Positions 18,711 to 41,842 of a DNA stretch of 64,000 nucleotides are shown here, piece by piece. Under the pieces are notes generated by a model, which had not been told where the DNA came from, did not search any database, and saw only the letters and a program-made list of their open reading frames with translations. Location of the stretch: contig CDRNVI010000021.1 of NCBI GenBank assembly GCA_977017575.1, positions 186,001 to 250,000 on the forward strand, given 5' to 3'. The position numbers and the translations under genes were made by a program. This DNA is from Paramoeba atlantica. Taxonomy: Eukaryota > Protista > Discosea. Position 1 is the stretch's first letter. Every line of letters starts with the position of its first letter.

Positions 18711-19084
18711 ATCAATTTGATTAACGCCTTCTTAGCTTGAAGCCGACCCCTTTCGGCGCATCATGATTAAAATAAATTTTAAAAGGAAATAATGTTGCCA
18801 ATACATGCAAATACGCACGATGCTTAGACTATGTCTTAATCGAATCATCCTTATTTTTTCCTCCTTTTTTTTTCTCGTCTACTCGGTGCCAGGCCTGCCA
18901 AGGCGTGTATACTACGCCGTGATAATGATGGGTTGGTGACCCCTTACTAGGCTGCGTCTAGACTAGGGTAACCAACCCTACCATTGTGTTTATTGAATGC
19001 AGAATCATATTTAGATCTGCAGAGGTAAATTTCTACCTATGCTACGGTCGCATACGACGACCCCGCATAGGCTGTTTTACTAGC

Positions 19085-21475
19085 CTAGCCGCCCCCTTTC
19101 CAGTCGGGTGATTCCCGGTTTAGCCAAATAACAAAGCTACTACGAATTGCTTCGCGTATGGCTTCAAGTTGGCATTCCGTGGACAGCCCTTTGTCACTCC
19201 CAAAAAGGCGGGCTACCTGCCGAAGAGAGGAAGCCGGCAATCCTCTTACACCCACCTCCATACACAGCAGATGTGTGTTCGGGTGATCCATCCTGCGGCG
19301 ATGCAATATATTCTGATATTTTTCCGTTTTGCGGCAGTGTGCCTCCGCGATGTTGTCTTCCCAGGGTACGGTCAGTTCAACGATAAATTCAGTTCCATCG
19401 TGAAGCCTGACCAGGCCATCTGGACGCCGAGTGGTTTCTAGGTCTGCCCACCAACTTGGGAGGTTACGGAGGCCCTCGAGGTCGAATGAGGCCCAGGAGG
19501 TGTTGGGGGAGCCGACGATCGCGTTCGCAAGGACGCTCAACACTCTGTCATGTCGATACGTGTAGCGTCCTTGGTCTAAGGATGTCCTGCAACCTGAGAG
19601 CAGGTGCCTTAAGGTTTCGGGTGCTGAGTTGCAGATACGGCAAGACACACTATTTGCACCATTCTTCCCCCATGTTCTGAGCATGGTCCGGGTAGGAAGT
19701 GGGGCTTGGACCATCACATGTGTAGCGAATCTGCTCAGTGAAGTGCTCCTAAGGCCGTTAATGGCAGCTGCAAAATCTTTCGCCTGATCTTCCTCCGTGT
19801 TCGTGTCCCACCACTGTATGGCAACCGTGGTGCGGCGTCGCAGAGCGTTAATCATACGCTCCTCGTTCAGGTCAATGAGAGTTTTCCTGGCGCGAGATCG
19901 GTCGTTCAAGCAGTGCGTTATGTGAGTTGCGGGCCGTATTTGTCCTTTCAAGCGTCTCTCCTCTTCTTCCCGTATTTTGTTCCGAAGCACAGCTGCGGCA
20001 GCCGGATCTTTGGATTTCTTTAACTGGCACATAAGGTCTGCAGTACATTCATGCCACAGTTGCGACAGGCTCCTCAGTCCCCAGCCGCGCGATGAGTAAA
20101 TTGCTTCGGGACTAGAGCCACGCGCCACGTTAATCCAACGCCGCAGGAAGTTGGTACAGAGTTTCTGGAGTCGGAGGACAAAGTTCATAGTGATGCACGG
20201 GTGGATCGTAAGCGAGAAGCGCAAGCGGGAGATAATGGCATGCTGATATATCCATAGTCGCGAAGGGAGGTCGTGGGCGCTCTTATCGATATTTCTGAGC
20301 CATGAATTAATGAGAGGACGTAGCTTCATGAACAGCGCACGGGACTGTTGTGCTCCAGGGGCGATGATCATGCCCAGAAAGGTGCTACCTGCATCACAGA
20401 TTTGGGGAATGGGAATGTGATTGACCAGAATTTGTGGACGGCGTGTCATGTAACCTGGGTGTTCATCGTCCGGTCGCACGGCCATGCATTGTACCCTACT
20501 CTTTTTCACGTTTATAGATAAACCTATTTTGCGGAGGATTGAGGATAGGGCTCCAAGTGCGATTTGTGACTCCTTCGGGTTGCTGGTGAGGACAGTGAGA
20601 TCGTCAGCGTAGGCCTTTATAAAGCATTTCGCATTGCCTGGCAGATCGAGTCCGTACGCGGGAAAGTTAAGTGTCATATAACGCAGTACTACTTCCATGA
20701 CGATAAGGAATATAGACGGGGAGAGGGTGTCGCCTTGGAGTACCCCACGTTGCACAGGAATTGTAGAGGAGAGACCTTCATAACACTTTATTTGCGTAGA
20801 CGCTCCGTTATATAAACTACTGATGTACCCGAGGAGAGTCGGGGAGATCTTGGCCCATTGCATCGCCTCAAATATAACATTGTGTGGGACTGAACCGAAT
20901 GCGTTGGATAGGTCCAGTTGGGCTAAGCAGTATTGGAGCTTGTTCTTTCTGTAGTGCTGCAAGATTGCATCCAGCGTCTGAGTGTGTTCCAGTGTCCCGT
21001 TGATGGCCGGTAGGAAACCCTTTCGGATTGATGGATCAATTACTGCTGCCTCGACCAGATGGCGGTTTATTTTGCGACTTATGATCGAATGGAGAAGCTT
21101 AGCTAGAACACTGATGAGACTGATGGGGCGCCAGTTTTGGGGTTGATCGTGAGCTCCATTTTTATGAATTAGGCGGGTAACAGAGCATTTCCAGGAAGGT
21201 GGGCAAGTGCGATACTTGAGCAACGCGTTGAAGACTGTAGCGATGTGTGAGTGTACGCTGTGACACCGTTTTAGGATGGTATATGTGATGGTGTCTTGAC
21301 CTGGGGCACTGCCATTCCTTTTCGAGATTAGAGCGTCGGATATTTCGGTCGGGGTCAGCTCTTCCCATGACATGTCGACAAGAGGACGGGTCCCAAGCGA
21401 GTCAGACGGAGGAATGTGGTATTCCTCTGAAGGAGCAGAAAGTGTATCACCAAAGTGCTTTTCCACGCTGTGCAC
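19085..21475 (-). CDS. Reverse transcriptase + zinc knuckle + restriction-like endonuclease
   Basis: KGFL, LDLSNAFGSVPH, GVLQGDTLSP, YADD; CRIC...HLLSGC, RYTYRHDRVL, RPDG...VELTVPWE...KTEKY. Confidence 0.92.
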   Translation of the reverse strand: MHSVEKHFGDTLSAPSEEYHIPPSDSLGTRPLVDMSWEELTPTEISDALISKRNGSAPGQDTITYTILKRCHSVHSHIATVFNALLKYRTCPPSWKCSVTRLIHKNGAHDQPQNWRPISLISVLAKLLHSIISRKINRHLVEAAVIDPSIRKGFLPAINGTLEHTQTLDAILQHYRKNKLQYCLAQLDLSNAFGSVPHNVIFEAMQWAKISPTLLGYISSLYNGASTQIKCYEGLSSTIPVQRGVLQGDTLSPSIFLIVMEVVLRYMTLNFPAYGLDLPGNAKCFIKAYADDLTVLTSNPKESQIALGALSSILRKIGLSINVKKSRVQCMAVRPDDEHPGYMTRRPQILVNHIPIPQICDAGSTFLGMIIAPGAQQSRALFMKLRPLINSWLRNIDKSAHDLPSRLWIYQHAIISRLRFSLTIHPCITMNFVLRLQKLCTNFLRRWINVARGSSPEAIYSSRGWGLRSLSQLWHECTADLMCQLKKSKDPAAAAVLRNKIREEEERRLKGQIRPATHITHCLNDRSRARKTLIDLNEERMINALRRRTTVAIQWWDTNTEEDQAKDFAAAINGLRSTSLSRFATHVMVQAPLPTRTMLRTWGKNGANSVSCRICNSAPETLRHLLSGCRTSLDQGRYTYRHDRVLSVLANAIVGSPNTSWASFDLEGLRNLPSWWADLETTRRPDGLVRLHDGTEFIVELTVPWEDNIAEAHCRKTEKYQNILHRRRMDHPNTHLLCMEVGVRGLPASSLRQVARLFGSDKGLSTECQLEAIREAIRSSFVIWLNRESPDWKGGG

Positions 21476-21641
21476 ATCGCATGTAGGATAGGAGGCTGGG
21501 GCTTCAAGACCGATGTTTCAAGACCGAGGTTTGTCCAATGTTTCGCTAGCGGCGGTCCATGGGTTTCTGTTAAAGCGTTTCAGTGCCCGGCGTTGTTCGA
21601 GTGTTTGCCGCTGTGCGGTGGCCTCCGCATGATAAACCCTT

Positions 21642-24578: not shown

Positions 24579-24780
24579 GAAGGGTCGTAAAAGTAGGGGA
24601 AAATAAACAACAAGCAACAACAAGCAAACCATCTCCGTAGATACCTAGATAACGAGGACAAGCCCACAAGTGCCAGGCAGGCCTGAAACCCCCCGTATTT
24701 TCCTTTATGTCTTCCCATTTTCCATTGAAATGACAGATCCCTTCCTTTTTATATTCACACTGTTGCATGCACCATAGAGT

Positions 24781-25481
24781 AGCTCAACACTGTTTCGTGC
24801 AGCGACTCAACCGGCTTTGGGTGGCTCAACGCCGTAACAACAGCGGATCTACACTACATGCGAGCGGCTCAACGCTGTATTAACAGCGGCTCAACGCTCC
24901 ATTTCATCAGCATGAGTGGCTCAACGCTGTATCAACAGCGGCTCTACACTACATGCGAGCGGCTCAACGCTGTATCAACAGCGGCTCAACGCTCCATTTC
25001 ATCAGCATGAGTGGCTCAACGCTGTATCAACAGCGGCTCTACACTACATGCGAGCGGCTCAACGCTGTATTGACAGCGGCTCAACGCTCCATTCCATCAG
25101 CATGAGTGGCTCAACGCTGTATCAACAGCGGCTCTACACTACATGCGAGCGGCTCAACGCTGTATTGACAGCGGCTCAACGCTCCATTCCATCAGCATGA
25201 GTGGCTCAACGCTGTAACAACAGCGGCTCTACACTACATGCGAGCGGCTCAACGCTGTATCAACAGCGGCTCTACACTACATGCGAGCGGCTCAACGCTG
25301 TATCAACAGCGGCTCAACGCTCCATTCCACCAGCATGAGTGGCTCAACGCTGTATCAACAGCGGTTCTACACTACATGCGAGCGGCTCAACGCTGTATTG
25401 ACAGCGGCTCAACGCTCCATTCCATCAGCATGAGTGGCTCAACGCTGTAACAACAGCGGCTCTACACTACATGCGAGCGGC
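24781..25481. repeat. Higher-order minisatellite (~95-bp unit built from 21/22/30-bp GCGGCTC-initiated monomers)
   Basis: Monomers GCGGCTCAACGCTGTATCAACA, GCGGCTCTACACTACATGCGA and GCGGCTCAACGCTCCATTCCATCAGCATGA recur in irregular order. Confidence 0.9.
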
Positions 25482-25521
25482 TTGATGTTTCTTTTTTTTT
25501 TTTGCTTACAAAAAGGTTGAT

Positions 25522-28500
25522 CTTTTTTTTTTGGGGGGGGGGATACGAGTTGAAAACAAGCAATCAAATTAGCAATTCTTTTTCTTTCCACAGATGTACC
25601 TTTTTTCTCAGCCCAAAACTAGCAATTTAGTCTCCCCTAAGTATATACTACAAACAAGAAAAACAGTAAAAATTAAAACAAGCAATCCATGCCCAATCCA
25701 TTCGCGCGTTCCGGACCGGGTCTTTCGACCTCTCCACGGCCTGACTTGTGAACCCTTCCCTTGTTATATGGGAGGGCGCAGGCGCGGGCCTGTGTCGACA
25801 GCGACACGGTCACGAAACAGGATGCTGGCCGACGGGGAGGAGATTCACTACCCGTGTGCTACCTCACTTGGGGTACCTAGCCCTCGCGGGCTAGGCGTGA
25901 GTATAGACTCTGTCGACCCGACCAGCACCCGTCCTGGATACCATGGTGTCTTCGTGCTGAAATAGGACTGTCAGTCCGAATCCCTACCTATCTCACATTG
26001 GGGTACCTCACTCTCGAAGGCGAGGCGTGAGAATAGGCACTGTAGGCTCGATCGCTCCTGCCGGTCCGCAGCTGGCACGATTCGGTGTGGTGTCAGAGGG
26101 TGCCTCGTGCAGTAAAGCGAGACTGGCATGGATATCCACGTCTGCCATGCGTCTTACAAGCATTCGTGCCTGAGACCGCATGAGCGTAACGTTCATGTCC
26201 TGGAGAAGAAAAAACATTGACGTTTGCTCGGACATATCACCCTTACATGCTGCGGCTCTTTTTCCCGCGATCTTCTTCAGCATATGGAGGGACGTCGGAC
26301 TCCATGATCCGTACGATTCCACTACCATGGCGGTGAAATCATGTCCGGCCTCTAGAGCCTCTTGCCTTTGTCCACGCTTGTGGTTCGTCGCATATTTCTC
26401 TGCGAAGGCCCCTGCAGCTACCATGCCAGCAGAACGGACCAGGTCCGTATATTTCTGTTGCTGGACGTGGGTCACCGCAAAATCAAAGACAAGGCCTTTA
26501 CCGAGCGTGTAGCTCGGAAGGAACACATCCCCTGGTCTTGTGAGTGCCCCCCTGGACCTCTGTTGCCGAGGCTGTGCTCCCTTTTCGGAGACAAATTGGC
26601 CTTTTGACAAACGTCAAAGAACTGGAGGGCCAAGGCATTATGCCTCGCCGAGATCCCGTAGTCGTGTTTACAGACCAATGCGTGGTCTCCTTGTGGTCCC
26701 ATCGGAAGCGTGCATCCTGAGACGGGACAGGGGTGTGTTTCTGGATATACTTTTTGTCCTAGCCACCAGGTGCACAGGGTGCGAAACTCCGTTTTAGTAA
26801 AGGCGTGCCCCTTTTCCCTGGAGGGCGTGACAAACAGCCAGTCACCTGCCCCTTTTCCAGATTGAGATATCCAACGTGCCCTCGTTTGAGGATCAGCTTT
26901 CTGATATGCATCGGTGTACTCGCGGGAAGAAATTGCACGGCTGAGCACCTTTTGGCGTGCGACTCGGTCGTTGGAAGATGAAAATTCGTGGTCGAGTTTC
27001 GTTTGTTCAAAGTAAGTGGTCGTCGTGTCTCCGGGTGGTGCTACGGAAAGATTCGCCGGGAGAGGTCGTTTTGATCCACGGAGACCCAGTACTTTTTTGA
27101 GGTGAGAGAGAGAGGAAGCGTGCTGAGGGGAAATTAGACCGGTTTTCTCTTCCAGGACGCTGGTGCCCGCTCGTGAATTGACGTCCAGTATTGCATCAGC
27201 AAAATCTTTTGCGTCGAGGGAGTTCCAGTTGTCCTTATCCGCTGCGAAAGAGACTGAGGAAACGTACGCCGATGAGGCATGCATCGCTGAAGAGCGCAGC
27301 CCGAATCCACCATAAGATTTTGGACGTTGTACTTGTGCGGCAGCGTCTTCATTTAAAGGACATATAGAGCGTTCCGTGGTATGCAGTATTGCTGTGTCAA
27401 GTTCTTCGCATAGCTCATGGACGGAATTGGTGGGTGTGGTTCTAAGAGAATATGCCATTTGGCTGAAACCAGCACATTGTCGGATGAGTGCGAGGGAAAC
27501 TTGCGGGTCTTCCATGTATTCGATCGCGGCTAGGGATTCTTCAGCAGGCAACAGGGTGTGTTCACGGAGAAATTCTGTGCAGAAATCAGTCGTTCCTACA
27601 GGGCTACATAAAATTGAAAAATTTCCCTCGCTTGTCTTTTTAGTCGTCGGGATGTTGTCGAAGCTGTCCAAGTGTTCGGCGGATTCAGGATGTGTAATCG
27701 CCTCGCACTTGCTGGCGTTTAGGAAGATGCCCCACTGTGGGCCGACTCGTTCGATGATGTCTAAAGCTCGTCTGACGTCGTGAGCCTTCCCCCCGAGAAT
27801 GCCGTCATCCAAATACCACAGATTAAGCTTAAGAAGACCAGGAAGTTGTCGATCTATCTCGGTAGTAACCAGTTGCATGACGAGGGAAAAAAGTAAAGGA
27901 CCCAACGGATCCCCTTGTTGCACACCCTCCTTTGAAGAAATCTGACGGAAACCGTAAGTGAGAATACTCTCGGTGGTGTAACACCATTCAACCCACTGGG
28001 AGAGCTCCGGGAAGTGCTCCCTCATAAGTGCAGCAAAGGCAGTTCTTGAGATGTTGTTAAAGGCATTTCGCAGATCCACTTTACATAGCGTGAAATCAGA
28101 ACTTCCCGCCTGAGAGGCCATCACGTGCCTACACAGGTGGATCAGGCGTTCGGCCCCTGCAGGTGTTGCGACTCCGTATTGATGAGGCCAGAGTAGTTTG
28201 CTTGCCTTTTCCTTTACTGCGGAGCAGGCCGCTTTGCTCACAAGTCGCCTTATTGTTTCGCCGGCAGCAATAGGACGGACATCATTTTCTCCCTTTTCTA
28301 AGGCACATAGTCTGGCGCCGCCGAAGAACTTCTGGACTTGGAGACAACCTTTCCCGGACAGCAAGAGGTTCATGACTTCCTTGAGATAGAAAAGCGGCTG
28401 TACCTTGTCGTCAGGGTGTGCTGCTAAGGCGCTCTGGAGATGCTCAGGGCGGAGGCCCATGGTGCCAGCCGATGTTCCGCGCCGGAAACTGCGTAGTGCC

Positions 28501-29904
28501 TTTTCAACTTCGCCTTCGGATAGATGTAAAGGCTCTCCTTCTATGGACGGAATGTGACTGAAGATGATAAAGGCAATCTACCTGGGTGCTTCGATTGGAG
28601 TTTTTCGTAAGTTTCTTCGGATTCAGGTGCCATCGGTGCTGCTGTAAGAGCTGCCATCGCACGGGAAAACTCCCCTTGTCTGGCCAGCAACTCGGCTCGT
28701 TTCGCCGCCTTGCCGGACTCGTCCACTTCCTCATCGTCGTTCCTCTCCCGCTTCTTTACCATTTGCGCAACAGATTCGTTCCACAGTGCCGCGTATTCCC
28801 TGGATTCCCAGCGATCCATGCGTTGGCTCGTTTTCGTGGTATAGGACGAATTTCCTTTTCGTCCCCCTCTTTTGGGCGCGGGCAGGACACATTTTGGGAG
28901 CATCGCTAAGCGTGTCCAGGCCTCAACCGAGTTCTCTCTAACCACTGCAGCCATTGTTTGGGTCAAAACGGAGGCCCACTGTTGTCTGCATCGGAATGGT
29001 ACATCTTTGCATGTGTTGATGGCGTAAGAGCAGACATAATCAAGAGACGGGAGCGAATCCTTGTAAATTTGGGAAATGGAAGCCTCTTCGGTTTCTGGCT
29101 CACAGGTTAGCGACGAGGTGTAAGAGCTAAAGGAGTCTTGACATTTTTCCTCATGGGAAGCTTTTTTATTGTGATCATAGTGCTTGCCGCATGAGGGGCA
29201 TAAGAAACGTCCTTCTTTTTCCCACCATTCCGAAGGCACAGTATCGCTATGTTGGCTTGCGACGTGATGGTAGTAGGCCTGCCACTTCCCTCCGTGTGCT
29301 GCGGTGCTCCAGTTGCACACTTCGACTGGACAGGTGCGACGTCTCATTGTGTCTCGTCTAGCTGGTTGGCGAGTCTTGGAATCTTTACTAACCCCTCTCT
29401 CGAAAATTTTGGGCGTCGACTTTTGGCTAGAAAGAGGGCTTTTTCGTAGGAGAAGCCTCGCTGTGGCCATGGAATGTGGTTCGTACCGCTCTGGGGTTTG
29501 GCTTGTTACTTCTTGACCTTTGCCAGACGTATTGGGGGCACAGTCCCTTGATACGCTGGAATGATTTCTCTCTTCGTCTGCCGATAAAATCATCCCCGTG
29601 TCAGGTGTCTGCTCTCGGTGCAAAGAATGTAGTGCCGTTTCCATTTTGTCTTGCCAGGCCGGTGTAATATTGGCGTCGTGTAGAGGGATTCATCATATGT
29701 ACTAGTTGCAGCGATAAGATGCTGATTACCCTCAAATTGGTCCCAGGAGCCTGGCGTGTGTGTTTTCTCCTCTTGGGCAAAAAGGTCATCTTCTGGTATC
29801 GTCATCGAGCCGCATGAATCAGCCTCCCTCATTGTCCGGATAAAAGAAATAGGGAAAGAAAAATAAGTCAACAAGGTACAGAAACTGTATCTTTATCGTT
29901 AAAG
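25522..29904 (-). mobile_element. SL-headed CRE/SLACS-type retrotransposon, unit E (frameshifted)
   Basis: SL 29869-29904; ATG 29832; ORF pieces 29832->28541, 28460-26472 (RT, WYLDD) and 26610-26008 (RLE: RPGDVFL, DFAVT, VVESYGSWS); C-run plus poly(A) near 25522-25542. Confidence 0.9.
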
Positions 29905-32900
29905 TTTTTTTTTTTTTATAATAGCTATATTAATTATACTTTTTTTTTACGCGTCCTTACTAGCAACAACAACAACAACAACAACTTACTTCCACACTTT
30001 ACGCGTCCTTACATGCGCAACGAAGGACGCAGGTTTTCTGCGGGCATCCGGAGTACCAACATGCGCGCTTGGGCTCGCATAAGGGTCACGTTCATTTCCG
30101 TGAGGAGGCGTTGGAAGGCCTTTCCACGCGAAAGTGTGCCCTGCGAAGCAGCTGAGCGGCGCTCGGCAACTTCTCGGAGAATTCCCCGCGCGCTCTCCGA
30201 CCAGGACCCGAAGGATTCCACCGCCATCGCGGTGAATCTATACCCTTGGGATTCGGCCTCGAGGCGCTCCAAACGTTTGTGTGCCGTAGCGTACCGTTCG
30301 GCAAAGGATCCTGCGTTTCCCACGTTAGCGCCTCGGACTGAGTTCGTATATGTAGGTTGCTGAACGTGAGTTACGCAGAAGTCCAATACCAAACCGGTAG
30401 CTAGGCCAAAGTTTGGGAGGAAGACATCGCCTGGTCTGGTGGGGCCGCCGCCCGGGCCGTGGTTGCCTAGACTGACCTCTCGTTGCGGGGCGAGGTGTGC
30501 CTTGGTGCACACGTCGCAGAAGTGCTCGACAAGGGCGTTGTGCCGGGAGATGAGGCCGTAGCCGCTTTTGCATGCGAGGGCATGCTGGCCATCAGATCCT
30601 AGCGGTTGGTTAGACTTGTCCATAGGGCAAGGGCGGGGGGTGTCGTAGACGTCTGCCCCGAGCCACCAGCGTGCCAGGGCGCGGAACTCCGTAGGGGTAA
30701 GGGCGTACCCCAGCTCTTTGGATGGGAGGACAAAGGCCCAGTTTGCGGCCGCTTCCCCGCTTTGAGAGAGCCATCTCGCTCTCGTTTCCTGATCAGCAGC
30801 CTCGAGCGCGCGGTAGAATTCTCGGGCGGCTATTGCTCGAGAAATGGTTTGTTGCTTAGGCGGAGTTGGACTTGCCGGTGGGGACTCTGGATCCTCTGGT
30901 GAGAGGTACCCTGTATGTACGTCGATGAGGGGTTTGTCGGACAGTTCGTTTACGTGGGCCATTGCCTCGCGGAAACCTTCTGCATCCAGCGCGTCCCATC
31001 CGTCTTGGCTCGCTGCGAAAGAGACAGAGGAAACGTATGCTGCTGAGCAGAAGAGAGACGAGGAGTGAAGACCGAAGCCGCCATATTCCTTTCTGCTCTG
31101 AGCCTGGACGCGTCCGGGAGGATTGAGTGAGCAAAGCGCGTCTTCTAATGCTTGTATCACCGCGGTGTCGAGGCTTGAGCATAGGTCTAATAAGGGTTTG
31201 GTAGGTGTTGCTCGGAGGGAGAAGACGAGCTGGCAAAAGCCAGAACATTGGCGGATGAGGGTTAGTGCTACTTGGGGGTCGTCGATTTTCTTTATAGCGC
31301 TGAGTGTGGACAATGCTGGGGCCAAGGCGTGTTCCCGGAGGTAGTCACTACAGTATTGCGCGGATCCCACCGGGCTGCCGAGGATGCTGAAATTACCGTC
31401 GCGGAGGATTCTCTGTTGCGGGATCTCAGGGAATAGTGCGACGCGGTGTGCGGATGGAGGCTTTAAAATCAATTCACACTTATGAGTGTTAAGAAGGAGT
31501 CCGAGTTGTTGACCTTCCCGTGCGATGATGTCGAGGGCTTGCTTGACGAGTGCTGCCTTTCCGGCGAGGACTCCATCGTCAAGGTACCAGACATGCAGGA
31601 AGAGTTCTTCGGGAAGCTCGGCGTTGATGATCTCCGCGAGGTGACGGATTACCAGGGAAAAAAGGAGTGGCCCCAAGGGGTCACCTTGCTGAACGCCTTC
31701 TGCGGAGTGCACTATGTGTTGTCCGAAAGTGAGATAGCTTTCCGTTTCGTAACACCATTCTACCCATTTAGAGAGGTTCGGGAAATGCTCCTGAGTCAAG
31801 GAAAGAAAGGCGGATCTTGAAACGTTATTAAAAGCGTTTGAGAGGTCAACTTTGCACAGGACGAAATCGGTATCATCAGCGTACTTGGTTACCGTCTGAC
31901 GACACAGGTGAATCATGCGCTCGGCTCCAGCGGCGGTGGCAACACCGTATTGCTGTCCTTGAAAGAACGTACTTGCTTTCGCCTTGCTTGCCGCACAGGC
32001 TGCCTTGCTTGCGATGCGACGAATAGTTTCACCTACGGCTATTGGGCGGATGTCCTGTTCGCCTTTCTGCAGTGCGCAGAGACGAGCTCCGGCGAAATAT
32101 TCGTGGGAGTCAAGGTGAGCCTTACCCGACAGAAGGAGATTAATAAGGTCAGTGAGGGCTGCGAGGGGCTTGGTCTTTGAATCAATGTTCACCAGCAGGG
32201 CCTCTTGGATGTGCTCCGGGCGGAGACCCATGGTGCCACCCGAGGAGCAACGACGAAAGGATTTCACAACCGACTCTAGCTCTTTTTCGGTGACCTGGAG
32301 CTTTTTCGGTGTTCCTGGATCTCTGTTGTGGTGGGAAACGTGTGTGGCGCTAGAGTGGGAAGGCGACAAGGATGTTTTTTCTGAAATTTGGCGAGGGACT
32401 CAGCGTTGTCCGGAGCCAAAGGGGACGAGATGAGGGCTGTGATGGCTCGGGAAAGTTCGCCTTGCCGTGCGAGAAGATCTGCCCGAACTTCTGTTCGCGT
32501 CATTCCTATGCGAGCGGAGACGTCTCGCTTCTTTAGGAAGTCGCTCTCCGCATTCTTCCAGAGGGAGGCATATTCCCCTGACTGCCACCGCAGAAGCGAC
32601 CCCTTTACATGATTAGAATATGATGTGTGACCCTTTCGACCGACGCGGTGGGGTGCAGGGAGTACACATTTCGGCAGCATGGCTAACAACGTCCAGGCGG
32701 TTACGGTGTTGTCCTTCACCGCTTAGTAGAGGACATCTGTCAGCACTGAGGCCCACAGTTGCCGACATCGATAAGGGACATTTTTACAGGTGTTCATCGG
32801 GGTACTGCATATGGTGCGAAGGGACGGTAAGTCGGTAGGCGACTCCCTAAGGTGGTCTGGTGATGAAACCTGAGGATCAATGGGAGAGGCAGCAGGAGGG

Positions 32901-35025
32901 TCGGTGCCTGCGGGGCATGAGCCGAGGTGGGAGGTTTTCTTGGCTAGGTCGTAGTTTTTCCTGCAAGAAGAGCAAAGGAACCTTCCATGGGATGTCCACC
33001 AATCTTCGGAAACGGTATCACTGTGCCGAAGGGCCACGTGGTTGAAATATGCCTGCCATTGACCTCCATGAGACGCTGAGCTCCAGGAGCAGCCTTCGGC
33101 CGGGCATTCTCGGGTCTCGGTAGGCAATAAATTCGAAAGTGTAGCAGCATTGACGCTGTTAGACTGGAGCAGAACGGAGCGGTGAGCCGAGTACGAGTTT
33201 TTAGGGCCCGGATTTTGTTCTATACCCCCACGAAAGAGTTCCATCTGCGCGGAGCGCTGGGTCCATCCTGTATTAGCTTCCAGCTCGTGGGTGGGTGGGA
33301 TTGAGTTTCGGGCTACGTATTGAGGGCCTGGGTTCCATTCCACCCCCCCTCGCATAAGACCGATATCGATTTGTGTTTTGCTCCATCCAGATTGAGCAAT
33401 TAGGTCTCGCGTCGGGGCGAAACACCAGAGCGGTCCGTCCGGGGAAGGAATTTCTTTCCACGCAGTGGCAAATTCCGTGTCGATACCAATTTGATTGCAG
33501 AGGGCGAAAGGGCACCGGTCAGGGGGAGTGGTTCGAGGGATGGCAATAAGGGTTCGCCCCGTTGGGTGGGTGAAAACTGCTGTCCTATTGCCTGGGATCG
33601 TACTAGATTGAGGAGCACACTGAAGTGCTGCGCTCACAGAGGTACCGGCAAGTTGTCCGATAGTGCAGTTGAGATCAAGACTGTGCAAATTGCAGGGGAT
33701 GGTTCTGAGATAACTGGTTTATTCGAATACTTGTGACGGAGTTCGGGCAAAAGCGAAGGTGGACGTCCACGCTAGTATCTCCTGGTTCTTGCTCGACGTC
33801 GTCGTCGTCCATCCATTCCTCTATGGGAATGTCGCAAATTTCTCGAGGAGGGAAGGGGGGGTTTCGTAGGGCTGATTGGCCAGAGTACCGTACCATGGGT
33901 AGCAAAACTGACTCAAATGCTTTACTCTCTTCTAGGATGGTCTTCTCCCTCTCTTCTAGAGCTAATCGGAAGGCCCTCTTGATGTCGTGCTCAAGATGGG
34001 TTTGCTGGTGCTCGTTTAGAAGGGAAGCGTCCATAAACTGCTTCGTACATTTAGAGCATACGTGTCCTTGTTTTTTGGTGATGGAAAGTTTACGGGTCAA
34101 GGCAATGTAGTACTGCTTTATGACTTGTAGATTTGCTATGCAAATCTTGTGTCGGGCTAGTTCCTCCTGTGCAAGAAGCTGTGTCACCGCCGAGGAAAAC
34201 TTCTGTGCTTCCGAGCACGCTGCGATGTACCCCAAGAATCCTTCATTGGGCGCACGGGTTCTTTTTGAACTCTGGGGCTGAGACTCCTTCTGAGCCTTGT
34301 CGATTAAGGATAGGCGCTCTTCTAGAGAAAGCGGGCGATACTGGTCCGATTTAGGCTCGTTTGAATTTGCGCCAAGATGAGTAGGTGCGGATGTCGGGCG
34401 GTCGCTGCCATGTGATCCAACCGCTTGAGCGTAGGTACTGCGTCGGTGAGATCCTTTGAAAGGCGCAGTGGAACGAAGTGGGAGTATCGAACCCCCACCG
34501 TGAGAGGGTTTGGGAGAAGAGGCGATGGTACGTTTTTGTGCGGGTAGCATATCACACTCATCGCAGCGTTTAAAGTAGTGGCGCGAAGGAGAAAACGAGG
34601 AAGCGCATAGTTCGCACGTTTTCGACGCCGACGGAGCGTTTGAAAAGGATAGCGAGCATGTCTCACACCACCGGAAGTATGGTCTGGCAGGGGAAAAGGG
34701 GGCAGAGCAAGCTACACATATTTTTTTGTGGGCCACGGTAAGGGAGGAAACAGATTTCGGCGCGGAAGTCTTGAACGGAGAATACGACCTGATAACAGGT
34801 TGTGCAGGAGGGGGTACGAATTTGGGTGAACATTTCACACAAAAGCGATGGGAGGGGCTCTGTGGGACGAAACGCGTGCCACAGTGGCAACACCAGAGCT
34901 TCCCCCCTGATCGAGGGTCATTCATTGGTGTCTTGTAATTGATTAATGAAAGAAAAAGGTAATAATTCAACAAGGTACAGAAACTGTATCTTTATCGTTT
35001 TTTTTTTGTATCTTTATCGTTAAAG
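29905..35025 (-). mobile_element. SL-headed CRE-type retrotransposon, unit D (ORF1 + ORF2; ORF2 has one stop and one frameshift)
   Basis: SL 34968-35025 (interrupted); ORF1 34925-33675; ORF2 pieces 33688-32723, 32719-32276 and 32369-30009 (WYLDD; RPGDVFL, DFCVT, AVESFGSWS); poly(A) 29905-29917. Confidence 0.9.
33675..34925 (-). CDS. ORF1 of unit D: three C2C2-like ribbons and one C2H2 finger
   Basis: CCHC...FCVKC, CVAC...WCETC, CELC...RCDEC, CSKC...HQQTH. Confidence 0.75.
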   Translation of the reverse strand: MNDPRSGGKLWCCHCGTRFVPQSPSHRFCVKCSPKFVPPPAQPVIRSYSPFKTSAPKSVSSLTVAHKKICVACSAPFSPARPYFRWCETCSLSFSNAPSASKTCELCASSFSPSRHYFKRCDECDMLPAQKRTIASSPKPSHGGGSILPLRSTAPFKGSHRRSTYAQAVGSHGSDRPTSAPTHLGANSNEPKSDQYRPLSLEERLSLIDKAQKESQPQSSKRTRAPNEGFLGYIAACSEAQKFSSAVTQLLAQEELARHKICIANLQVIKQYYIALTRKLSITKKQGHVCSKCTKQFMDASLLNEHQQTHLEHDIKRAFRLALEEREKTILEESKAFESVLLPMVRYSGQSALRNPPFPPREICDIPIEEWMDDDDVEQEPGDTSVDVHLRFCPNSVTSIRINQLSQNHPLQFAQS

Positions 35026-35026
35026 A

Positions 35027-36372
35027 TTTTTTTTTTGCAGATATATACGGATGCTTCTATTAAGAGTATGGTTAGTTCTCAGGAAATTCGAAGTGGCGCT
35101 GGTATTGTGGTTATACTTTTTTTTTTTTTTTTTTGAGTACGAATTCTAACTTTTCTTTTATACTACTACGACTTTCCTACTTCATTTCTTAACATTCCCG
35201 TATCTTACCCACTTTTTCCCGTTAACGCGTTTCCACCTACCCGCTTTCCCGTTAACGACTTTCCACTTATTCACTTTCCTTTTCCCACTTTCCCTTTACC
35301 CACTTTCCCTTTACCCACTTTCCCTTTACCCGTTTTCCGCTTAACTTTTTCCCCTACCCCCTCTCCTTTTCCACTTCCCCACGACCTCCAAGTCATTCGC
35401 GCAAGAAGATCACTAAGCAAGGTGCAGATCGCCGGGTCCGGAAACAACTTCGAAACCCACTTACCTCGCACTGGGAACCTCACTCGTAAAAGCGAGGCGC
35501 GAGAATTAGCCCCGTCAGCACGATCAACCCCCGAGGACTTTCCCAGGTGCCTTTACCGGCCTGTCCTTCGACGTTCTGCCCGCTTTCGCGCGTTCTTGTT
35601 GACATGGCCGCCCGCTGACACCGAGTTAGCTGAGAGGTTACACATTTTTTGATTGAGATTAGTAACTTCATCTACCCGGTCGAAGGTAAACGTACCCGCC
35701 CGCTGGGTCCTAATCGCCATGACGGCTTTCGGGCCTACTAGGTGCAGAGGAACCTCCGTTGTCTTCAGGTGACCAGTCGACACGCGAAGCTTATCGACCC
35801 TCTCCATGAAGGATTCTAATAAACATACGGTCTCTCCAACGGCATCCATGGCATTCTCATACCAGATGCTTATTAGAGCCTCGTTCGTATGTTCTGCGGG
35901 GAATGGTATTTTGGCGCTGGGCAGCTCACACAAAAGATCATTGGCGAGATTTCGATGGGCACGCCCGGAACCTCTAAGTTCACTGAGGAGGAGGTGGCAA
36001 AGGTCCAAGGATTGGGTATGAATCCTTGAGAGTGTGTGGTAAGCGTCGTCGCACCACAACGCGTAAGTCGTCTCCCCAGAAAGAGGTGGCTCGAAAGGAT
36101 TCCAAACCCAATCCTCCAGTCTGTTACAATTCCTACTGGCGTAATGTGCCAGGCGTCGCGAGAGAGGAAAAACCGGTTCACCATAGTATGCGATGTCTTC
36201 CTCATAAGATGTGCCTGTGTCCCCTGGGTCGAACGGCTCAGAGAGATTGCAATCAGATTCGTAGTCATCCTCGCTGCAAGGAAAAGATTCTGTCATAAAA
36301 CAGAAAACGTAGTAGAGAAAGGAAAAAGAAATAATTCAACAAGGTACAGAAACTGTATCTTTATCGTTAAAG
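35027..36372 (-). mobile_element. SL-headed RT-less passenger unit C
   Basis: SL 36337-36372; 40-nt UTR; 247-aa ORF; 3' structured motif shared with units A and E (35455-35525); purine-rich tail; poly(A) 35027-35036. Confidence 0.8.
35553..36296 (-). CDS. Hypothetical 247-aa protein (acidic N-terminus, basic C-terminus)
   Basis: Starts at the first ATG after the SL; uninterrupted; no family recognised. Confidence 0.6.
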   Translation of the reverse strand: MTESFPCSEDDYESDCNLSEPFDPGDTGTSYEEDIAYYGEPVFPLSRRLAHYASRNCNRLEDWVWNPFEPPLSGETTYALWCDDAYHTLSRIHTQSLDLCHLLLSELRGSGRAHRNLANDLLCELPSAKIPFPAEHTNEALISIWYENAMDAVGETVCLLESFMERVDKLRVSTGHLKTTEVPLHLVGPKAVMAIRTQRAGTFTFDRVDEVTNLNQKMCNLSANSVSAGGHVNKNARKRAERRRTGR

Positions 36373-36373
36373 C

Positions 36374-37120
36374 TTTTTTTTTGGGGGGGGGATAGTATTG
36401 AGTTTAACGTTTTTATCTACTTTTCGAACACTTTCGCACACTTTTCACACTTCACCGTACTTACTCTCCCCACTTCACCGTACTTACTCCCCACTTTCCA
36501 CACTTTCCCTTAACCCTCTCATCCATCCCCGTCCTTACCCCCTACCCTATACCGACTCGTCCGCGCGAGCGCCCATGTGGTCCAGAGCCTCCGCTCCCAC
36601 CCCGTTAGCAGTATAAGATACTTTGTGTTGCTGTACGAGGGTGGGAGATGTGGAGGTGACCTCCGCTCCCACCCCGTTAGCAGTATCAGATACTTTGAGT
36701 TGCTGTACGAGGGTGGGAGACGTGGAGGTAACGAAGCGCAAAGACGCCGTCGCGCCAAGGGCAAAAAGCGGGAAGAGGGACATGGCGGGACGGACGCGGA
36801 GACGAGGGAAAACGACGCCGCAGCCCATCCGTCTGGAACTCTGCCCCCACCCCGTGAGCAAGTATACAATACTTTGGGCTGCTGGCACGGGGGTGGGGGA
36901 CGCAAGAGAGAAAGACAGAAGAACAACGAGCGCGCAGAGGCGGGAGGAAGAGGTGGGGAGACATGACGCGAGGGGATGATGGGATGAGAGAGGGAGGAGG
37001 GTTGCCGGCAACAGAGTGAGAATTTGAGGGGGGTGCCCTCCCATGGTCCAGAAGATGTTGTAGGAAAGAAAAGGAGAAATAATTCAACAAGGTACAGAAA
37101 CTGTATCTTTATCGTTAAAG
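36374..37120 (-). mobile_element. SL-headed RT-less passenger unit B with three hairpin repeats
   Basis: SL 37085-37120; first ATG 37044; hairpins at 36588-36656, 36660-36728 and 36843-36899; C-run plus poly(A) at 36374-36391, the same end type as unit E. Confidence 0.8.
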
Positions 37121-37639
37121 ATTTTTTTTTTTAACTTTCTATAAATGTACGGTATCACTTTCTTACTTACTTTCCTACTTACTTTACTTCGCCCTTATCA
37201 ACTTCGCCCGCTTCTCTCCCTTCTCCCCCCCCCCCCCAAAGAAACCATCCGCGACTTCCCGACTTCACCCGCTTCTTTCCCTCACTTCCCCCCCCCCGAG
37301 CATCCATCCGCGCCTTCCAAACTTTGCCCTCCGCTTTCCCTCACTTCCCCCCAGAAATCAATCCGCGCGTGCTCCACTCCTTCTTCCAGCAGTGCGCGCT
37401 TCGGACCGGGTCTCTCGACCTCTCCACGGCCTGGCTTGGGAACCCTTCCCTTGTTATACGGGAAGGCGCAGGCGCGGGCATGTGCCGACAGCGGCACGGT
37501 CACGAAGTTGGGTTTTGATCGCCGGATTCGGATGAACATTCCGAATCCATACCTGTCTCACATTGGGGTACCTTGCTCGTGAAAGCGAGGCGTGAGGATA
37601 GGCACTGTCGGCTCGATCGGCCTCGGGCCGCTCTGGAGG

Positions 37640-40600
37640 CTATTCCTCCAGAGTTGCGATGGGGTCTTCGGAAGGTGAACGAGCAACCATCATGCGCGCT
37701 TGAAAGCGCATAAGGGTTATGTTTAGTTCAGCGAAGATTCGGCTCGTTGCCTCACCTTCCGAAAGTAGACCCCCCGAGGCGTGCGAACACCTCTCACCGA
37801 CTTTTCGGAGCACGGCTGAAGCGCTGGGGCTCCAGGCGCCATAACTTTCGACCACCATGGCCGTAAAGTCGCATCCTGCTTCTACGGCTTCTCGACGCTG
37901 CTTGCCCTTCTCCATTGAGGAATAATGTTCGGCAAATGACCCCGCGGCAACCCAGCTAGCGTTTCGGACTTTGTCCGTATATTTTAATTGCTGAGCATGG
38001 GTGACCGCGAAGTCAAGCACAATGGGATTTCCAAGAAAAAGGCTGGGCAAGTATATGTCGCCAGGTCTAGTGAGGGCCCCACCTGGGCCCCTGTTCCCGA
38101 GACTCTTTTCTCGTTGAGGGGCGAGGCGGGATCGACTGCACACGTCCGTGAACTGGTCCGTAACAGCGTTGTGCCTGGTCACAATACCATGGCCATGTTT
38201 GCAAGACAGTGCATGGTCCCCTTTGCTGTCAAGGGGGAGCGAGCATTTCGGCATGGGGCACGTGCTATCTTCATGGTAGATGTCCACGCCTAACCACCAA
38301 CGGGCCAAAGTTCGGAATTGTGTGGGGGTAAAGGCGTGCCCAAGGTCTTTCGAAGGAGTCACAAAGGCCCAGCTGCTCGCTCCCGTGCCACACTGGGAGA
38401 TCCACCTTGCACGGGTTCGTGCGTCAGTTGTCTCATATTCCTGGGAAAACGCATGGGCTGCAATAGCATAACTGATTACCCGCTGGCGCGGAATCTTCCC
38501 TTTGGGCCACTGTGGGGTTAACATGTCCTGGCATTCTTCAGAACCATAGAGGGGAGTCGAGAGTGGGTAGGCATCCGTGGGTGTGTTGGCCGTGCGGGAA
38601 GTCGTACGAAGAATATGTCCCGGAGGCTCGTCCGGGGGGTGAGGATCAATCCCTGGCGGAGGGCGCCTTCTCTTCCGGTAGGAGTACGGCGCGCTCAGGG
38701 CCTTCTCGCATGGGGCGTTGGGAGTTGTGAGAACACGACCTCGGGGATCGAGGAGAGCAGTGCCGGCCTTCTGATTGATATCGAGGATGGCCTCCGAGAA
38801 ACCTTCAGCGTCTGTGGGATCCCAGGAATCTTTGGCAGAGGCAAAGGCGACGGATGCAACGTAAGCCGCGGAGGCGTGGAGAGCTGCGGATCTCAGACCT
38901 AATCCCCCATGGCGCTTCAGTCGCTGTGCTTGAGATTGTGCTGACCTGTCCAGAGGACAGATGATTGCCTCTATAGCGGTCATGAGAAAGTCGTCTAAAC
39001 GGGAGCAAAGGTGAATCAGGGACTGTGGGGGCGTACTTCTCATGGCATACACCATTTGACAGAACCCCGCACATTGACGAATTAGGGCAAGTGCGACCTG
39101 GGGGTCCTGAATGTTGGTGATGGCATCGAGGGTATCCTCGGCTGGTTCTAGGGCGTGAGAAAGAAGATAAGCAGAGCAGTGGTCGGCGGATCCTACAGGA
39201 CTCCCTAGTATGTCAAAGTTCCCCTGCGAATTGATCTTCTCGTCGGGTATGTCTGGGAAGTAATCAGCCTGGTGGGCCGAGCTGGGGGAAGTAATAATTT
39301 CGCATTTCGACGTATTGAGATGCAAGCCCCATTGAGGTCCTACTCGGGCGATCGTGTCTAGGGCGTCTCTAACTTCCTGCGCCTGGCCAACGAGGACGCC
39401 ATCGTCGAGATACCAGAGTTGGGCGGGAATATCAGTTTGAAGGTTAATGGCTTCTGAGAGCTCCAGGGCCACTAACGAGAAGAGCAATGGTCCTAGGGGA
39501 TCGCCCTGTTGTACTCCTTCCTCGGAGGAGATGAATCGGGCCCCGTAGGTAAGAGAGCTGGGGTCGGAATAGCACCAATTGATCCAAGGGAAGAGTTCCG
39601 GGAAATATTCCTGTACTAGTGGAAGGAAGGCAGCCCTGCTTACGTTATTGAAAGCGTTACGTAGGTCCACTTTGCACATGACGAAGTTCGGGTTTTCCAT
39701 ATTGGACGACATGGCCAGGCGACACATGTGAATGACTCTTTCGGCCCCGGCTGGCGCTGCCACTCCGTACTGTTTGCCTTCAAAGAGCTCGCTCGCTTTG
39801 GGTCGGATTGCGTTGCATACGGCTTTGCTCGCTAATCGCCGAAGGGTTTCACCGGCAGCGATCGGATGAACATCATTTTCGCCCTTTGATAGGGCGCATA
39901 AGCGCGCCCCTGCAAAGTGCGCCTGTACTTCAGAGGGTGCCTTCCCAGCTAGGAGGTGATTTGTTAGCTTTGTGAGGGATCGGAGAAAGTCATTTCCGTG
40001 TACGAGCAGTGCTGCCTGTAGGTGCTCTGGGCGTAATCCCATAGTGCCGGCAGAGGAACCCCTGTTGAAGCTCTTCAGCGTCTTTGCAACTTCGCGTTCG
40101 TCAAGTTCCAGTGGAGCGCAGTTCGGAGGCGGGCAGTTTTCGCACGAGTCAATTTGAAGACGGCGGGGGTGTTTTTCTAGCAATTTTTCAAATGTCTCGT
40201 CATCGTCAGGCGCCATTGGATCTGACGTTAGGGAGGCCAACCCTCTAGAGAGCTCGCCGTGGCGGACGAGGAGTTCTGCTCGAATCGCTGCCTTCTCGTC
40301 TTCGTCAGGGAATTCCGTTGGGGACTTTTGCTTTTTTCGACAGGCTACAATTGCTTCGCTCCATAGGTCCGAGTACTCTTGTTCCGCCCAACGCTGCATG
40401 CATTTATACGCATGTGAGGCATATGCCATGTGGCCTTTGCGGCCCCCTCGATGCGGAGCTGGTAAAACGCATTTGGGAAGCATGGCCAGAAGCGTCCATG
40501 CCTGTAAGGAGTTTTCAGAGACCGCGTTCCGAATGGCGGAGGAGAGGATTTCTTCCCAGATCTGGCGGCAACGATAAGGCACGTCTTTGCACGTACTCAG

Positions 40601-41626
40601 CTGAAGAGAGCAGACAGAAGGAAGAGGTGGGAGCTCAAAGTTGGTGTTCTCTGGTGTTGGTGCGGTGCTCACTTCGTTGGGTGGAGTAAGAAGTTCGGGA
40701 GAAAGGAGCGCGACGGTTTTCGTTCCTTTGCAGCTGTGTGTGTGCGATGATCGTTTGTGGTTGTCGTAGTGGCGTCCGCATGAGGTGCATAGAAAACGGC
40801 CTTCTCTGTACCACCATTCATTAGGGATGCTGTTACCGTGCCGGCATGCGACATGGTTATAGAAGGCTTGCCAGGATCCGCCATGCGACGGACTGCGCCA
40901 TGAACATCCCTGGGCCGGGCACTCTCGGAGCGCGGCAGACTTTCCTTGGGACAATGAGTTGGGCTCAGCGAGGCTAACGCCAGCGTTTTCAATATTCTGG
41001 GTTTCGTGTCTTCTTCCTGGTTGCTCTTGAGATGGACCCGGAATAAGTTCATAAGGATGCAAGAGTGAAGGTGTCTCTGGGTCTACCCGGTATCGGATGA
41101 GCTTATTTCTCCGTGGAGTAGGGGTTTTCTTGGAGTGACCTTTAATGTCCTCATTGCTACGTGCTTGGGCGGATAGAGCAGTTTTGAGTGGTGTACTTAG
41201 ATGCTGTGTAGCATTCAAAGCCTCTTTCGTCTTCTTCGCTGGCGTTACTTGCCTGATAACAGCGGAGTGTTGCATCTCTTCATTTTCGACCTCCGTGTGA
41301 CCTGTGTCCGGTGTTGCATTAATCCCACCTACGATCGCGTTCGTTCGGCGGATCCAATCTTCAGAAATATTCTGAGGGATGGGGGTCGTGTAAACGTCTT
41401 CATGGTAGGTGCTCGTCCCCGTGTAAACGTCTTCATGGTAGGTGCTCGTCCCCGTGATTAAATGTTCGTTTCCTTTAAATTGGTCCCAAGACCCCGGTCG
41501 GTGAGTTCTGCCATTAATTTCTAAGCATTTGTCGTCCGTCTCCATGGCTTCGGCTTCGTGGTCCGGATTTCCGCTGTTGTCGTCTATGGGAGGAAGTGTG
41601 TCTGCGGGGGGGATGATACCAGACAT
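37640..41626 (-). CDS. CRE-clade polyprotein: zinc fingers, RT, zinc knuckle, RLE
   Basis: CPAQGC...HVACRH...CTSCGRHY; GVQQGDPLGP; WYLDD; CPMPKC...HALSC...RHN; RPGDIYL...DFAVT...VVESYGAWS. In-frame 33-bp tandem duplication at 41387-41452. Confidence 0.93.
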   Translation of the reverse strand: MSGIIPPADTLPPIDDNSGNPDHEAEAMETDDKCLEINGRTHRPGSWDQFKGNEHLITGTSTYHEDVYTGTSTYHEDVYTTPIPQNISEDWIRRTNAIVGGINATPDTGHTEVENEEMQHSAVIRQVTPAKKTKEALNATQHLSTPLKTALSAQARSNEDIKGHSKKTPTPRRNKLIRYRVDPETPSLLHPYELIPGPSQEQPGRRHETQNIENAGVSLAEPNSLSQGKSAALRECPAQGCSWRSPSHGGSWQAFYNHVACRHGNSIPNEWWYREGRFLCTSCGRHYDNHKRSSHTHSCKGTKTVALLSPELLTPPNEVSTAPTPENTNFELPPLPSVCSLQLSTCKDVPYRCRQIWEEILSSAIRNAVSENSLQAWTLLAMLPKCVLPAPHRGGRKGHMAYASHAYKCMQRWAEQEYSDLWSEAIVACRKKQKSPTEFPDEDEKAAIRAELLVRHGELSRGLASLTSDPMAPDDDETFEKLLEKHPRRLQIDSCENCPPPNCAPLELDEREVAKTLKSFNRGSSAGTMGLRPEHLQAALLVHGNDFLRSLTKLTNHLLAGKAPSEVQAHFAGARLCALSKGENDVHPIAAGETLRRLASKAVCNAIRPKASELFEGKQYGVAAPAGAERVIHMCRLAMSSNMENPNFVMCKVDLRNAFNNVSRAAFLPLVQEYFPELFPWINWCYSDPSSLTYGARFISSEEGVQQGDPLGPLLFSLVALELSEAINLQTDIPAQLWYLDDGVLVGQAQEVRDALDTIARVGPQWGLHLNTSKCEIITSPSSAHQADYFPDIPDEKINSQGNFDILGSPVGSADHCSAYLLSHALEPAEDTLDAITNIQDPQVALALIRQCAGFCQMVYAMRSTPPQSLIHLCSRLDDFLMTAIEAIICPLDRSAQSQAQRLKRHGGLGLRSAALHASAAYVASVAFASAKDSWDPTDAEGFSEAILDINQKAGTALLDPRGRVLTTPNAPCEKALSAPYSYRKRRRPPPGIDPHPPDEPPGHILRTTSRTANTPTDAYPLSTPLYGSEECQDMLTPQWPKGKIPRQRVISYAIAAHAFSQEYETTDARTRARWISQCGTGASSWAFVTPSKDLGHAFTPTQFRTLARWWLGVDIYHEDSTCPMPKCSLPLDSKGDHALSCKHGHGIVTRHNAVTDQFTDVCSRSRLAPQREKSLGNRGPGGALTRPGDIYLPSLFLGNPIVLDFAVTHAQQLKYTDKVRNASWVAAGSFAEHYSSMEKGKQRREAVEAGCDFTAMVVESYGAWSPSASAVLRKVGERCSHASGGLLSEGEATSRIFAELNITLMRFQARMMVARSPSEDPIATLEE

Positions 41627-41666
41627 AAAAATTAACCCGTACCTCGGAAAGAGATGAAATGGAATT

Positions 41667-41702
41667 CAACAAGGTACAGAAACTGTATCTTTATCGTTAA
41701 AG
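41667..41702 (-). other. SL exon-like sequence (other copies: 37085-37120, 36337-36372, 34968-35025, 29869-29904)
   Basis: Identical 36-mer CTTTAACGATAAAGATACAGTTTCTGTACCTTGTTG. With the preceding AAT seen in three copies it is 39 nt, the kinetoplastid SL length. Confidence 0.85.
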
Positions 41703-41711
41703 ATTTTTTTT

Positions 41712-41817
41712 CCCGTCCTCACACTTCGCTTCAGAGCTAGCTAGCACGTTTCTATTAGCTAGCAAATGCGACAGAAGCGACGCCGGGCTTGGAACCGGTA
41801 TCTAGCGTGTTTACGGA
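41712..41817 (-). ncRNA. Twister ribozyme (type P1, with P5 insertion)
   Basis: UCCG-UAA-ACAC-GC-UAGAUA-CCGG-UUCCAAGC-CCGG-[P5 UCGCUUC/GAAGCGA]-GUGU-GAGGA-CGGG. P1, P2, P4, T1 (UCC/GGA) and T2 (GC/GC) all pair. Predicted cleavage U41813^A41812. Confidence 0.9.
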
Positions 41818-41842
41818 GATGGTTATAATGAAATAATATTGT

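Follow-up and report, generated by a model that had tools for sequence, protein, structure and literature searches.

A twister ribozyme family at the left end of tyrosine-recombinase retroelements, with a putative internal template for end repair

Here we describe a twister ribozyme whose family is the left terminus of tyrosine-recombinase (YR) retroelements, carrying gag, YR, and RT/RNase H genes, and of their non-coding derivatives. The ribozyme lies on the minus strand at positions 41712–41817 of the window, i.e., the whole stretch of 64,000 nucleotides of Paramoeba atlantica DNA that was analysed, and was identified by its sequence, its fold, a covariance model (R1), and covariation among genomic copies. 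All helices and the pseudoknot T1 are backed by covariation; the twister is a genuine conserved structure, and its cleavage is predicted. Taken as a whole, we consider it probable that the twister is genuine, that it stands at the left end of a YR retroelement, and that an internal complementary region (ICR) of this element restores the letters lost to the ribozyme cut. The element in the window is dead and interrupted: twister, satellite, and YR body constitute the single 28-kb wreck of one element that has received two nested insertions.

Architecture and conservation of the twister

Read from 41817 to 41712 on the minus strand, the RNA contains a complete type-P1 twister set in the order P1, U^AA, P2, T2, P4, L4, two-tier P5, GA, and T1. 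P1 is formed by UCCG (41817–41814) and CGGG (41715–41712), with three Watson–Crick pairs and one G–U pair. The predicted scissile bond, between U41813 and A41812, belongs to the UAA segment (U41813, A41812, and A41811) that separates P1 (UCCG) from P2 (ACAC), and the UAA column is conserved in most copies. P2 pairs ACAC (41810–41807) with GUGU (41724–41721), and T2 joins GC (41806–41805) to GC (41788–41787). A 6-nt linker separates the 5' GC of T2 from P4, which is made up of CCGG (41798–41795) and CCGG (41786–41783) and encloses L4 UUCCAAGC (41794–41787). T1 is formed by UCC (41793–41791) and GGA (41718–41716), the latter preceded by G41720 and A41719. The outer tier of P5 pairs UCGCUUC (41780–41774) with GAAGCGA (41732–41726), and the inner tier is GCUAGC; CG lies between P4' and P5, and a single A between P5 and P2'. 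P5 is present and P3 absent. The minimum-free-energy fold (−38.3 kcal/mol, z = −2.5) recovers P1, P2, P4, and both tiers of P5. Every element listed in the original prediction, the two-tier P5 included, is found at the positions given there on the sense strand, and the prediction is borne out by sequence and fold. G41720 is presumably the equivalent of G45 in the crystal structures of the Osa-1-4 twister. The G-A ahead of T1 is kept in families A–D and F, while in family E an extra U is present (GAUGGA).

All core positions are intact in the window copy, where an A-run follows directly 3' of the 4-bp P1. The perfect complement of its P1 5' strand would be CGGAGAUGG, and because the actual strand differs from this partner, insertion of a train of spliced-leader (SL) retroposons may have trimmed the P1 3' strand. 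In most twisters P1 comprises two pairs or more, and inefficient cutting is possible without P1 (PMC8501958). The window copy may still cut read-through RNA from the minus strand, but any present cutting would be incidental, since the element that it heads is dead.

The covariance model R1 was built from 15 genomic copies drawn from families A, B, C, and F, with the window copy excluded. It matches the window copy from end to end with 79.6 bits (E = 1.7e-21), and finds at least 106 twister copies in the 45.7-Mb kinetoplastid genome, a count that is a lower bound since 150 of 11132 candidates were scored. BLAST of the twister stretch against its own assembly (45.7 Mb) returns dozens of copies of the 5' half. 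The copies fall into subfamilies A to F, among which P1, P2, P4, P5, and T1 differ in a compensatory manner. Covariation was evaluated on a model-guided alignment of 38 distinct copies, with P1, T1, and T2, which are absent from the model, added by hand. In this alignment, 87.3% of the pair cells are paired compared with 69.7% in shuffles, and none of 500 shuffles reaches the observed value. Cells altered on both sides number 205, against 67.7 in shuffles, and the covariation score is 0.507, against 0.09–0.13 for slid partners. Over the same 38 copies, P2 is paired to 93% and P4 to 99%, with compensatory changes present, T2 is invariant and 100% paired, and T1 is paired to 97%. The T1 pair 35–133 is C–G in 25 copies and U–A in 11, in agreement with the earlier proposal that UCC/GGA is a compensatory version of T1.

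The family resembles twister-P1 (Rfam RF03160, clan CL00120), as represented by Osa-1-4 of Oryza sativa, in the order of elements, in L4 UNCCAAGC, in having both pseudoknots, and in the conserved G before T1. Relative to Osa-1-4, the window copy has UCC/GGA rather than CCC/GGG as T1, its P1 comprises just 4 bp, and its cleavage is predicted. Relative to the Rfam twister-P1 model, the family is without the extra stem taken as P3, has P5 in addition, which is long and two-tier in the window copy, and scores below the gathering score. Scanned with Rfam at gathering thresholds, the whole window gives zero matches; in E-value mode the only match in the window is a partial one to Twister-P5 (16.8 bits, E = 0.52), and even when only 9 kb are searched, the window copy gives no match to twister-P1. 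Those sister copies whose P5 is short cover all 68 positions of the twister-P1 model with 37–39 bits (E ~1e-5, whole genome), and the gathering score of 67.2 bits is reached by no copy scanned. In these alignments of sister copies, the extra stem before P4, which we take as P3, is skipped and P5 is inserted. The low score is explained by the model itself, which has an extra stem that these RNAs lack, and no P5. Every consensus core position of Rfam twister-P1 is kept in families A–D and F, including the UAA site and the G-A before T1. The significant covariance-model score anticipated for the window copy was obtained with the genome-derived model, but not with Rfam twister-P1.

Organisation of the YR retroelement

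The YR element extends on the minus strand from 41830, its left end, to its right terminus at 13774, and is broken by the two nested insertions. It begins with a 5' leader segment CATTATAACCATC (41818–41830, minus strand) that holds the outer P1 5' side; among family A copies, homology starts at CA|TTAT. The family shows a sharp common 5' boundary 15–18 nt upstream of the cut (CA|TTATCAC in family A), and the ~29 nt of upstream sequence that the original prediction took to have been copied is thereby too long, homology among copies beginning only at that boundary. Immediately outside the left end, the most frequent dinucleotide is CA, which is found in about half of the family A copies and in the window (41830–41829), and the right end terminates in CA both in the window (13775–13774) and in the family A element L062. 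On weak evidence, CA may be a short crossover core for the recombinase, comparable to the trinucleotide proposed for DIRS elements.

Directly after the ribozyme, an A-run and a 16-kb train of SL-headed retroposons are nested in the element (25522–41711, minus strand). This train is foreign to the twister element; it contains SL relics at 41685, 37103, 36355, 34986, and 29887, and RT ORFs are present. The letter before CTTTAACGATAAAG varies among the SL relics, being T, T, G, and A at 41702, 37120, 36372, and 29904, respectively, as would be expected if the reverse transcriptase misread cap-proximal nucleotides that carry modifications. The train had been thought to be released from read-through transcripts by the twister; as it is nested in the leader of the YR element, any such release would be incidental. 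Still within the leader, a satellite array of 95/96-bp repeats was found by a tandem-repeat finder and BLAST (24818–25482, minus strand), and the same satellite occurs downstream of family A twisters elsewhere in the genome. Its position differs: the element of the window has it between twister and ICR, as part of the leader, and non-autonomous family A elements have it in the body, after the ICR (L062:1173–1824).

The ICR of the window is split. Its first half, L' (24627–24692, plus strand), is an inverted copy, predicted to be catalytically disabled, of the left end and the 5' half of the twister (23/26 by BLAST). The second half, R' (18865–18983, minus strand), consists of a hairpin (S), a degenerate twister-like module (T''), and an A-run; its sequence corresponds to the right end read in reverse complement. 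A HERO-like RLE retroposon with RT and zf-RVT and a short SL relic (18984–24626, minus strand) is inserted at the ICR junction and is likewise foreign to the twister element. When it is removed, L' and R' adjoin as they do in intact elements elsewhere. In other HERO-like copies (L070–L074), the SL relics are shortened at the 5' end to varying lengths; in the window copy, all that is left of the relic is a duplicated (C)CTTGTTG (24626–24606).

The body follows on the minus strand, with a gag-like ORF (17721–18710), a tyrosine recombinase ORF (16258–17157), and an RT/RNase H-like ORF (14330–16108). It is closed by the right terminus (13774–13893, minus strand), which is the inverse of 18983–18865 and ends ...CCCTACCA. 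The recombinase ORF displays the motifs ALRSCE, HTLRH, and RHY by alignment, together with a weak match to Pfam Phage_int_SAM_4; sequence searches of PDB and NCBIfam with this ORF gave no matches, and its five database relatives are all unannotated. For the RT/RNase H-like ORF, Pfam RVT_1 is matched with E = 1.7e-06 and 28.4 bits, just below the cut-off of 29.6, and RVT_3 with 22.3 bits, above the cut-off of 21.6.

That twister and YR body belong together is seen most clearly from the gag-like ORF. This ORF (18710–17721) has 23 genomic matches at about 20 distinct loci, and 17 of these loci possess an upstream twister on the same strand, 16 at a distance of 0.6–4.6 kb and the window's own at 23 kb, a distance that spans the two nested insertions. 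By our own arithmetic, the chance of a twister upstream of a gag-like locus is ~0.006 per locus. In family C, five elements about 7–12 kb long contain twister, ICR, gag, and inverted right terminus in that order. The general order of the element is left end with twister, variable leader, ICR, body, and right end, where the body between ICR and right end holds either gag-like, YR, and RT/RNase H ORFs or, in the non-autonomous family A, the 96-bp satellite. YR elements that lack a twister may exist, since the list of twisters is a lower bound.

The internal complementary region and the proposed cycle

In families A, B, C, and F, an inverted and degenerate copy of the first ~47 nt is located 0.25–1.5 kb downstream of the left end. 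It is followed, without spacer, by hairpin S (~50 nt), the degenerate forward twister-like module T'', and an A-run, and inversion of S plus T'' yields the unit's right end. Joining the right end to the left end and taking the reverse complement thus gives the sequence of the internal junction (...CCAACCCTCACATTATCACCACC...). In family A, this relation is seen in L062 between residues 917–1108 and the ends (51.. and ..2430), and in the window between 24692–24627 plus 18983–18865 and the ends (41830.. and ..13774). The left and right ends are inverted repeats only in part, the module common to T and T'' being only CATTATC..GTA.ACACGC. Long inverted terminal repeats with an ICR near the right repeat were not found; the ICR lies between leader and gag. 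Published work defines the DIRS ICR by such a junction and has proved it necessary for the rebuilding of incomplete DIRS-1 transcripts (PMC7192593, PMC6681497).

The relation between the left end and its ICR copy changes at the predicted cut. A private 13-mer AACCATCTCCGTA, a variant of P1, occurs in 45.7 Mb only at 41824–41812 (minus strand) and at 24627–24639 (plus strand). When the left end is compared with the ICR copy of the same element, 152 of 156 positions are identical from the start through A+1, and 269 of 360 from A+2 to the end of P4. Between families, T copies are identical in 3–9 of 11 positions before the cut, and in 28–30 of 30 after it. From this pattern it follows that the sequence on the 5' side of the scissile bond and the ICR undergo concerted evolution, and that the 3' part is under ribozyme constraint. 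In every family, the ICR copy is altered at A+2/A+3, at the G of T2, and in L4/P4, changes that fit avoidance of a second active ribozyme. The concerted evolution of left end and ICR could also reflect selection for pairing instead of templated repair. The intact P1 5' strand had been taken as a sign that the copied RNA was uncleaved, an argument that is not needed because the internal inverted copy carries exactly those letters.

The original prediction regarded the twister as the 5' ribozyme of the outer, HERO-like RLE non-LTR element, processing the co-transcript of that element and the SL train. The twister is indeed located upstream of RLE-type ORFs on the same strand, and a non-LTR element of Schistosoma is headed by twister variants (PMC8501958), but other copies of the HERO-like element make this assignment scarcely tenable. 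Five of them (98–100% identical) begin at window positions 24624–24614, with their own SL relics and unrelated flanks, and among the features checked upstream of them there is no satellite or matching leader. A place for the twister in the HERO-like 5' UTR was rejected, given the start of the HERO-like element at 24624–24626 with an SL relic and the unrelated flanks of the other copies. Conversely, BLAST of the 10 kb downstream of eight family A twisters returned one weak YR-element match and zero HERO-like ORFs, and at one locus examined in detail the next ORFs are without retroelement domains. The retroposons of the train bear SL relics, from which it follows that they derive from trans-spliced RNAs, which need no ribozyme. 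A ribozyme at the 5' boundary of an RLE or APE RT element was not found in independent copies, HERO-like and train elements being SL-headed. The twister does mark the 5' end of a retroelement, as had been suggested, but that of the YR element and not that of the HERO-like element with its own 5' ends at 24624–24614; on the point, raised there as a check, of whether other copies precede the satellite or the HERO-like ORF, the answer is positive for the satellite, found downstream of family A twisters, and negative for the ORF in the eight 10-kb stretches. It has also to be considered that twister, leader, and inverted half-twister could form an arm of their own, an independent TIR element that adjoins YR elements through a site preference of the recombinase or of a transposase of its own, and that has no part in YR replication. 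In favour of this, the arm has inverted ends of ~47 nt and a variable length of 0.25 to 1.5 kb, and the window body (18983–13774) has its own inverted termini. We regard this as unlikely, because the arm abuts hairpin S without spacer in families A, B, C, and F, the composite is mobile as a unit with shared outer boundaries in family A, and arm and YR body diverge together, family by family. Nor would two unrelated elements give rise to a junction that is the exact complement of right and left ends.

As for the nature of the RNA, a conserved leader structure that serves in packaging, priming, or translation and does not cleave in vivo, with a match between left end and ICR for annealing only, would be compatible with cleavage being a prediction, with Rfam thresholds not being reached, and with GAUGGA instead of GAGGA in family E. 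This is nevertheless improbable, considering that all core positions of Rfam twister-P1 are kept in families A–D and F, that the ICR copy is altered in every family at A+2/A+3, the T2 G, and L4/P4, and that the identity switch coincides with the predicted scissile bond. To a chance resemblance or decayed fragment of no structural meaning we assign a negligible probability. The gathering scan of Rfam is empty, and 27 of 100 window shuffles contain one or more matches to the 16-nt core alone when up to three mismatches are allowed, but neither point can be balanced against the full-length match of the window copy to a model made from other copies (79.6 bits), the number of copies (at least 106), and the covariation, including that of T1.

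Under the preferred reading, in which a genuine twister terminates a YR retroelement on the left and an ICR serves for end repair, we infer a replication cycle from the element architecture and the identity switch at the cut. Read-through (polycistronic) transcription would pass across the element, and the ribozyme would cut at U^A, 17–18 nt inside the element, to give a sub-genomic RNA with a 5'-OH and without the first letters. During completion of the cDNA, the ICR would act as the template that restores the lost P1 5' strand, as in the DIRS-1 model, and each new copy would thereby regain a working ribozyme. To our knowledge, kinetoplastid genes have no individual promoters, so a ribozyme would be a natural means for an element to set the 5' end of its own RNA. 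A type-P1 twister forfeits its substrate strand upon cutting, and the ICR would be a built-in repair template for the strand thus removed. That the twister is obligatory in the life cycle of the YR element, excising the RNA while the ICR re-templates 17–18 letters in each generation, we rate as an even chance. A search with the left arm of a full element (1860 letters) against three sequencing runs matched DNA contigs only, and gave nothing from the one possible RNA run.

Related copies and comparison with known elements

The twisters of families D and E differ from the window copy in several details. Family D (L031, L033, L035, L041, and L047–L053) has CUCC/GGAG as P2 and CCAG/CUGG as P4, and family E (L050 and L055–L059) has L4 UCCAAAGC and GAUGGA in place of GAGGA. 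Some copies of these two families adjoin remnants of non-LTR RTs (L049 and L041). At least 11 genomic matches of 57–58 nt cover only model positions 15–75, from P2 to P2', with near-equal scores (e.g., G000:C20:585381–585438 and C21:741464–741521); these could represent a P1-less class of twister, or copies of cleaved RNA. Antisense to the non-autonomous family A elements, L062:1109–1180 and L005 (oriented 2413–2480) contain an Sm-like site (AUUUUGG), a hairpin (CCGGG/CCCGG), and a run of T. This 3' half, similar to that of an snRNA or SL RNA, is located between the ICR and the 96-bp satellite. As a full SL RNA gene, the hairpin and T-run gave no exon–intron match, and no SL exon was found upstream.

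A metagenome scan with the exact core of the family gave no match, and with a looser core pattern at least 120 contigs, among which close relatives are few. One contig, Ga0100379_10116997 (L127:1262–1511), carries, on either side of a perfect hairpin, two complete twisters that are closely related and point in divergent directions. This arrangement resembles an ICR or a circle junction with two intact ribozymes. In L112, two direct twister copies are 1276 nt apart.

Self-cleaving ribozymes are present at the 5' ends of non-LTR elements (HDV-like ribozymes and twister variants), as well as in Penelope-like elements and retrozymes (hammerhead ribozymes). The HDV-like ribozymes of R2 elements process the 5' end of a retroelement RNA produced by read-through from host transcription units, as is predicted for the twister described here, but the classes of ribozyme and element differ. 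An HDV-like ribozyme makes its cut at the 5' edge of its own sequence and leaves nothing to be rebuilt. Perere-3 (2021, PMC8501958) also features a twister at the 5' end of a retroelement and transcripts from host promoters, with a cut that strips the P1 5' strand. In Perere-3, the new P1 5' strand is taken from the target-site duplication and varies by insertion site (PMC8501958). In the YR family, by contrast, the P1 5' strand is element-encoded, family-specific, and mirrored in the ICR, and the ribozyme is hosted by a YR retroelement, which belongs to neither the APE nor the RLE type of non-LTR element.

DIRS-1 and DIRS-like elements (Cappello et al. 1985; Malicki et al. 2020, PMC7192593) share with the present family YR, RT/RNase H, and an ICR, the latter having been proposed, and for DIRS-1 shown, to be required for rebuilding the full element from an incomplete transcript (PMC7192593). 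The origin of the incompleteness is different. In DIRS-1, transcription starts within the left LTR, whereas here the ribozyme cut would be the cause. The two also differ in architecture, the ICR being placed in the 5' leader here and near the right LTR in DIRS-1, and the present elements have no long LTR-like inverted repeats and the gene order gag–YR–RT/RH. This order is found in VIPER/TATE elements (Ribeiro et al. 2019, PMC6681497), which also have a kinetoplastid host and short non-autonomous derivatives that share their ends (cf. SIRE). The likeness to VIPER is one of gene order and not of protein comparison, and the termini of VIPER/TATE are split direct repeats (PMC6681497), whereas here inverted ends, an ICR, and a twister are found. 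The word "ribozyme" does not occur in the VIPER/TATE paper (PMC6681497). Our literature search returned no paper that links any ribozyme to YR retroelements, or twisters to kinetoplastids, and in agreement with the original prediction no euglenozoan twister has been reported in the literature searched.

The sequence pattern at the cut site provides a handle for testing the replication model of DIRS elements, for which direct evidence is scarce (PMC7192593). If the proposed reading is true, the abrupt identity switch at the predicted cut would testify, in natural sequences, to end repair templated by the ICR; no YR retroelement dependent on a ribozyme would have been described before, and no twister from Euglenozoa.
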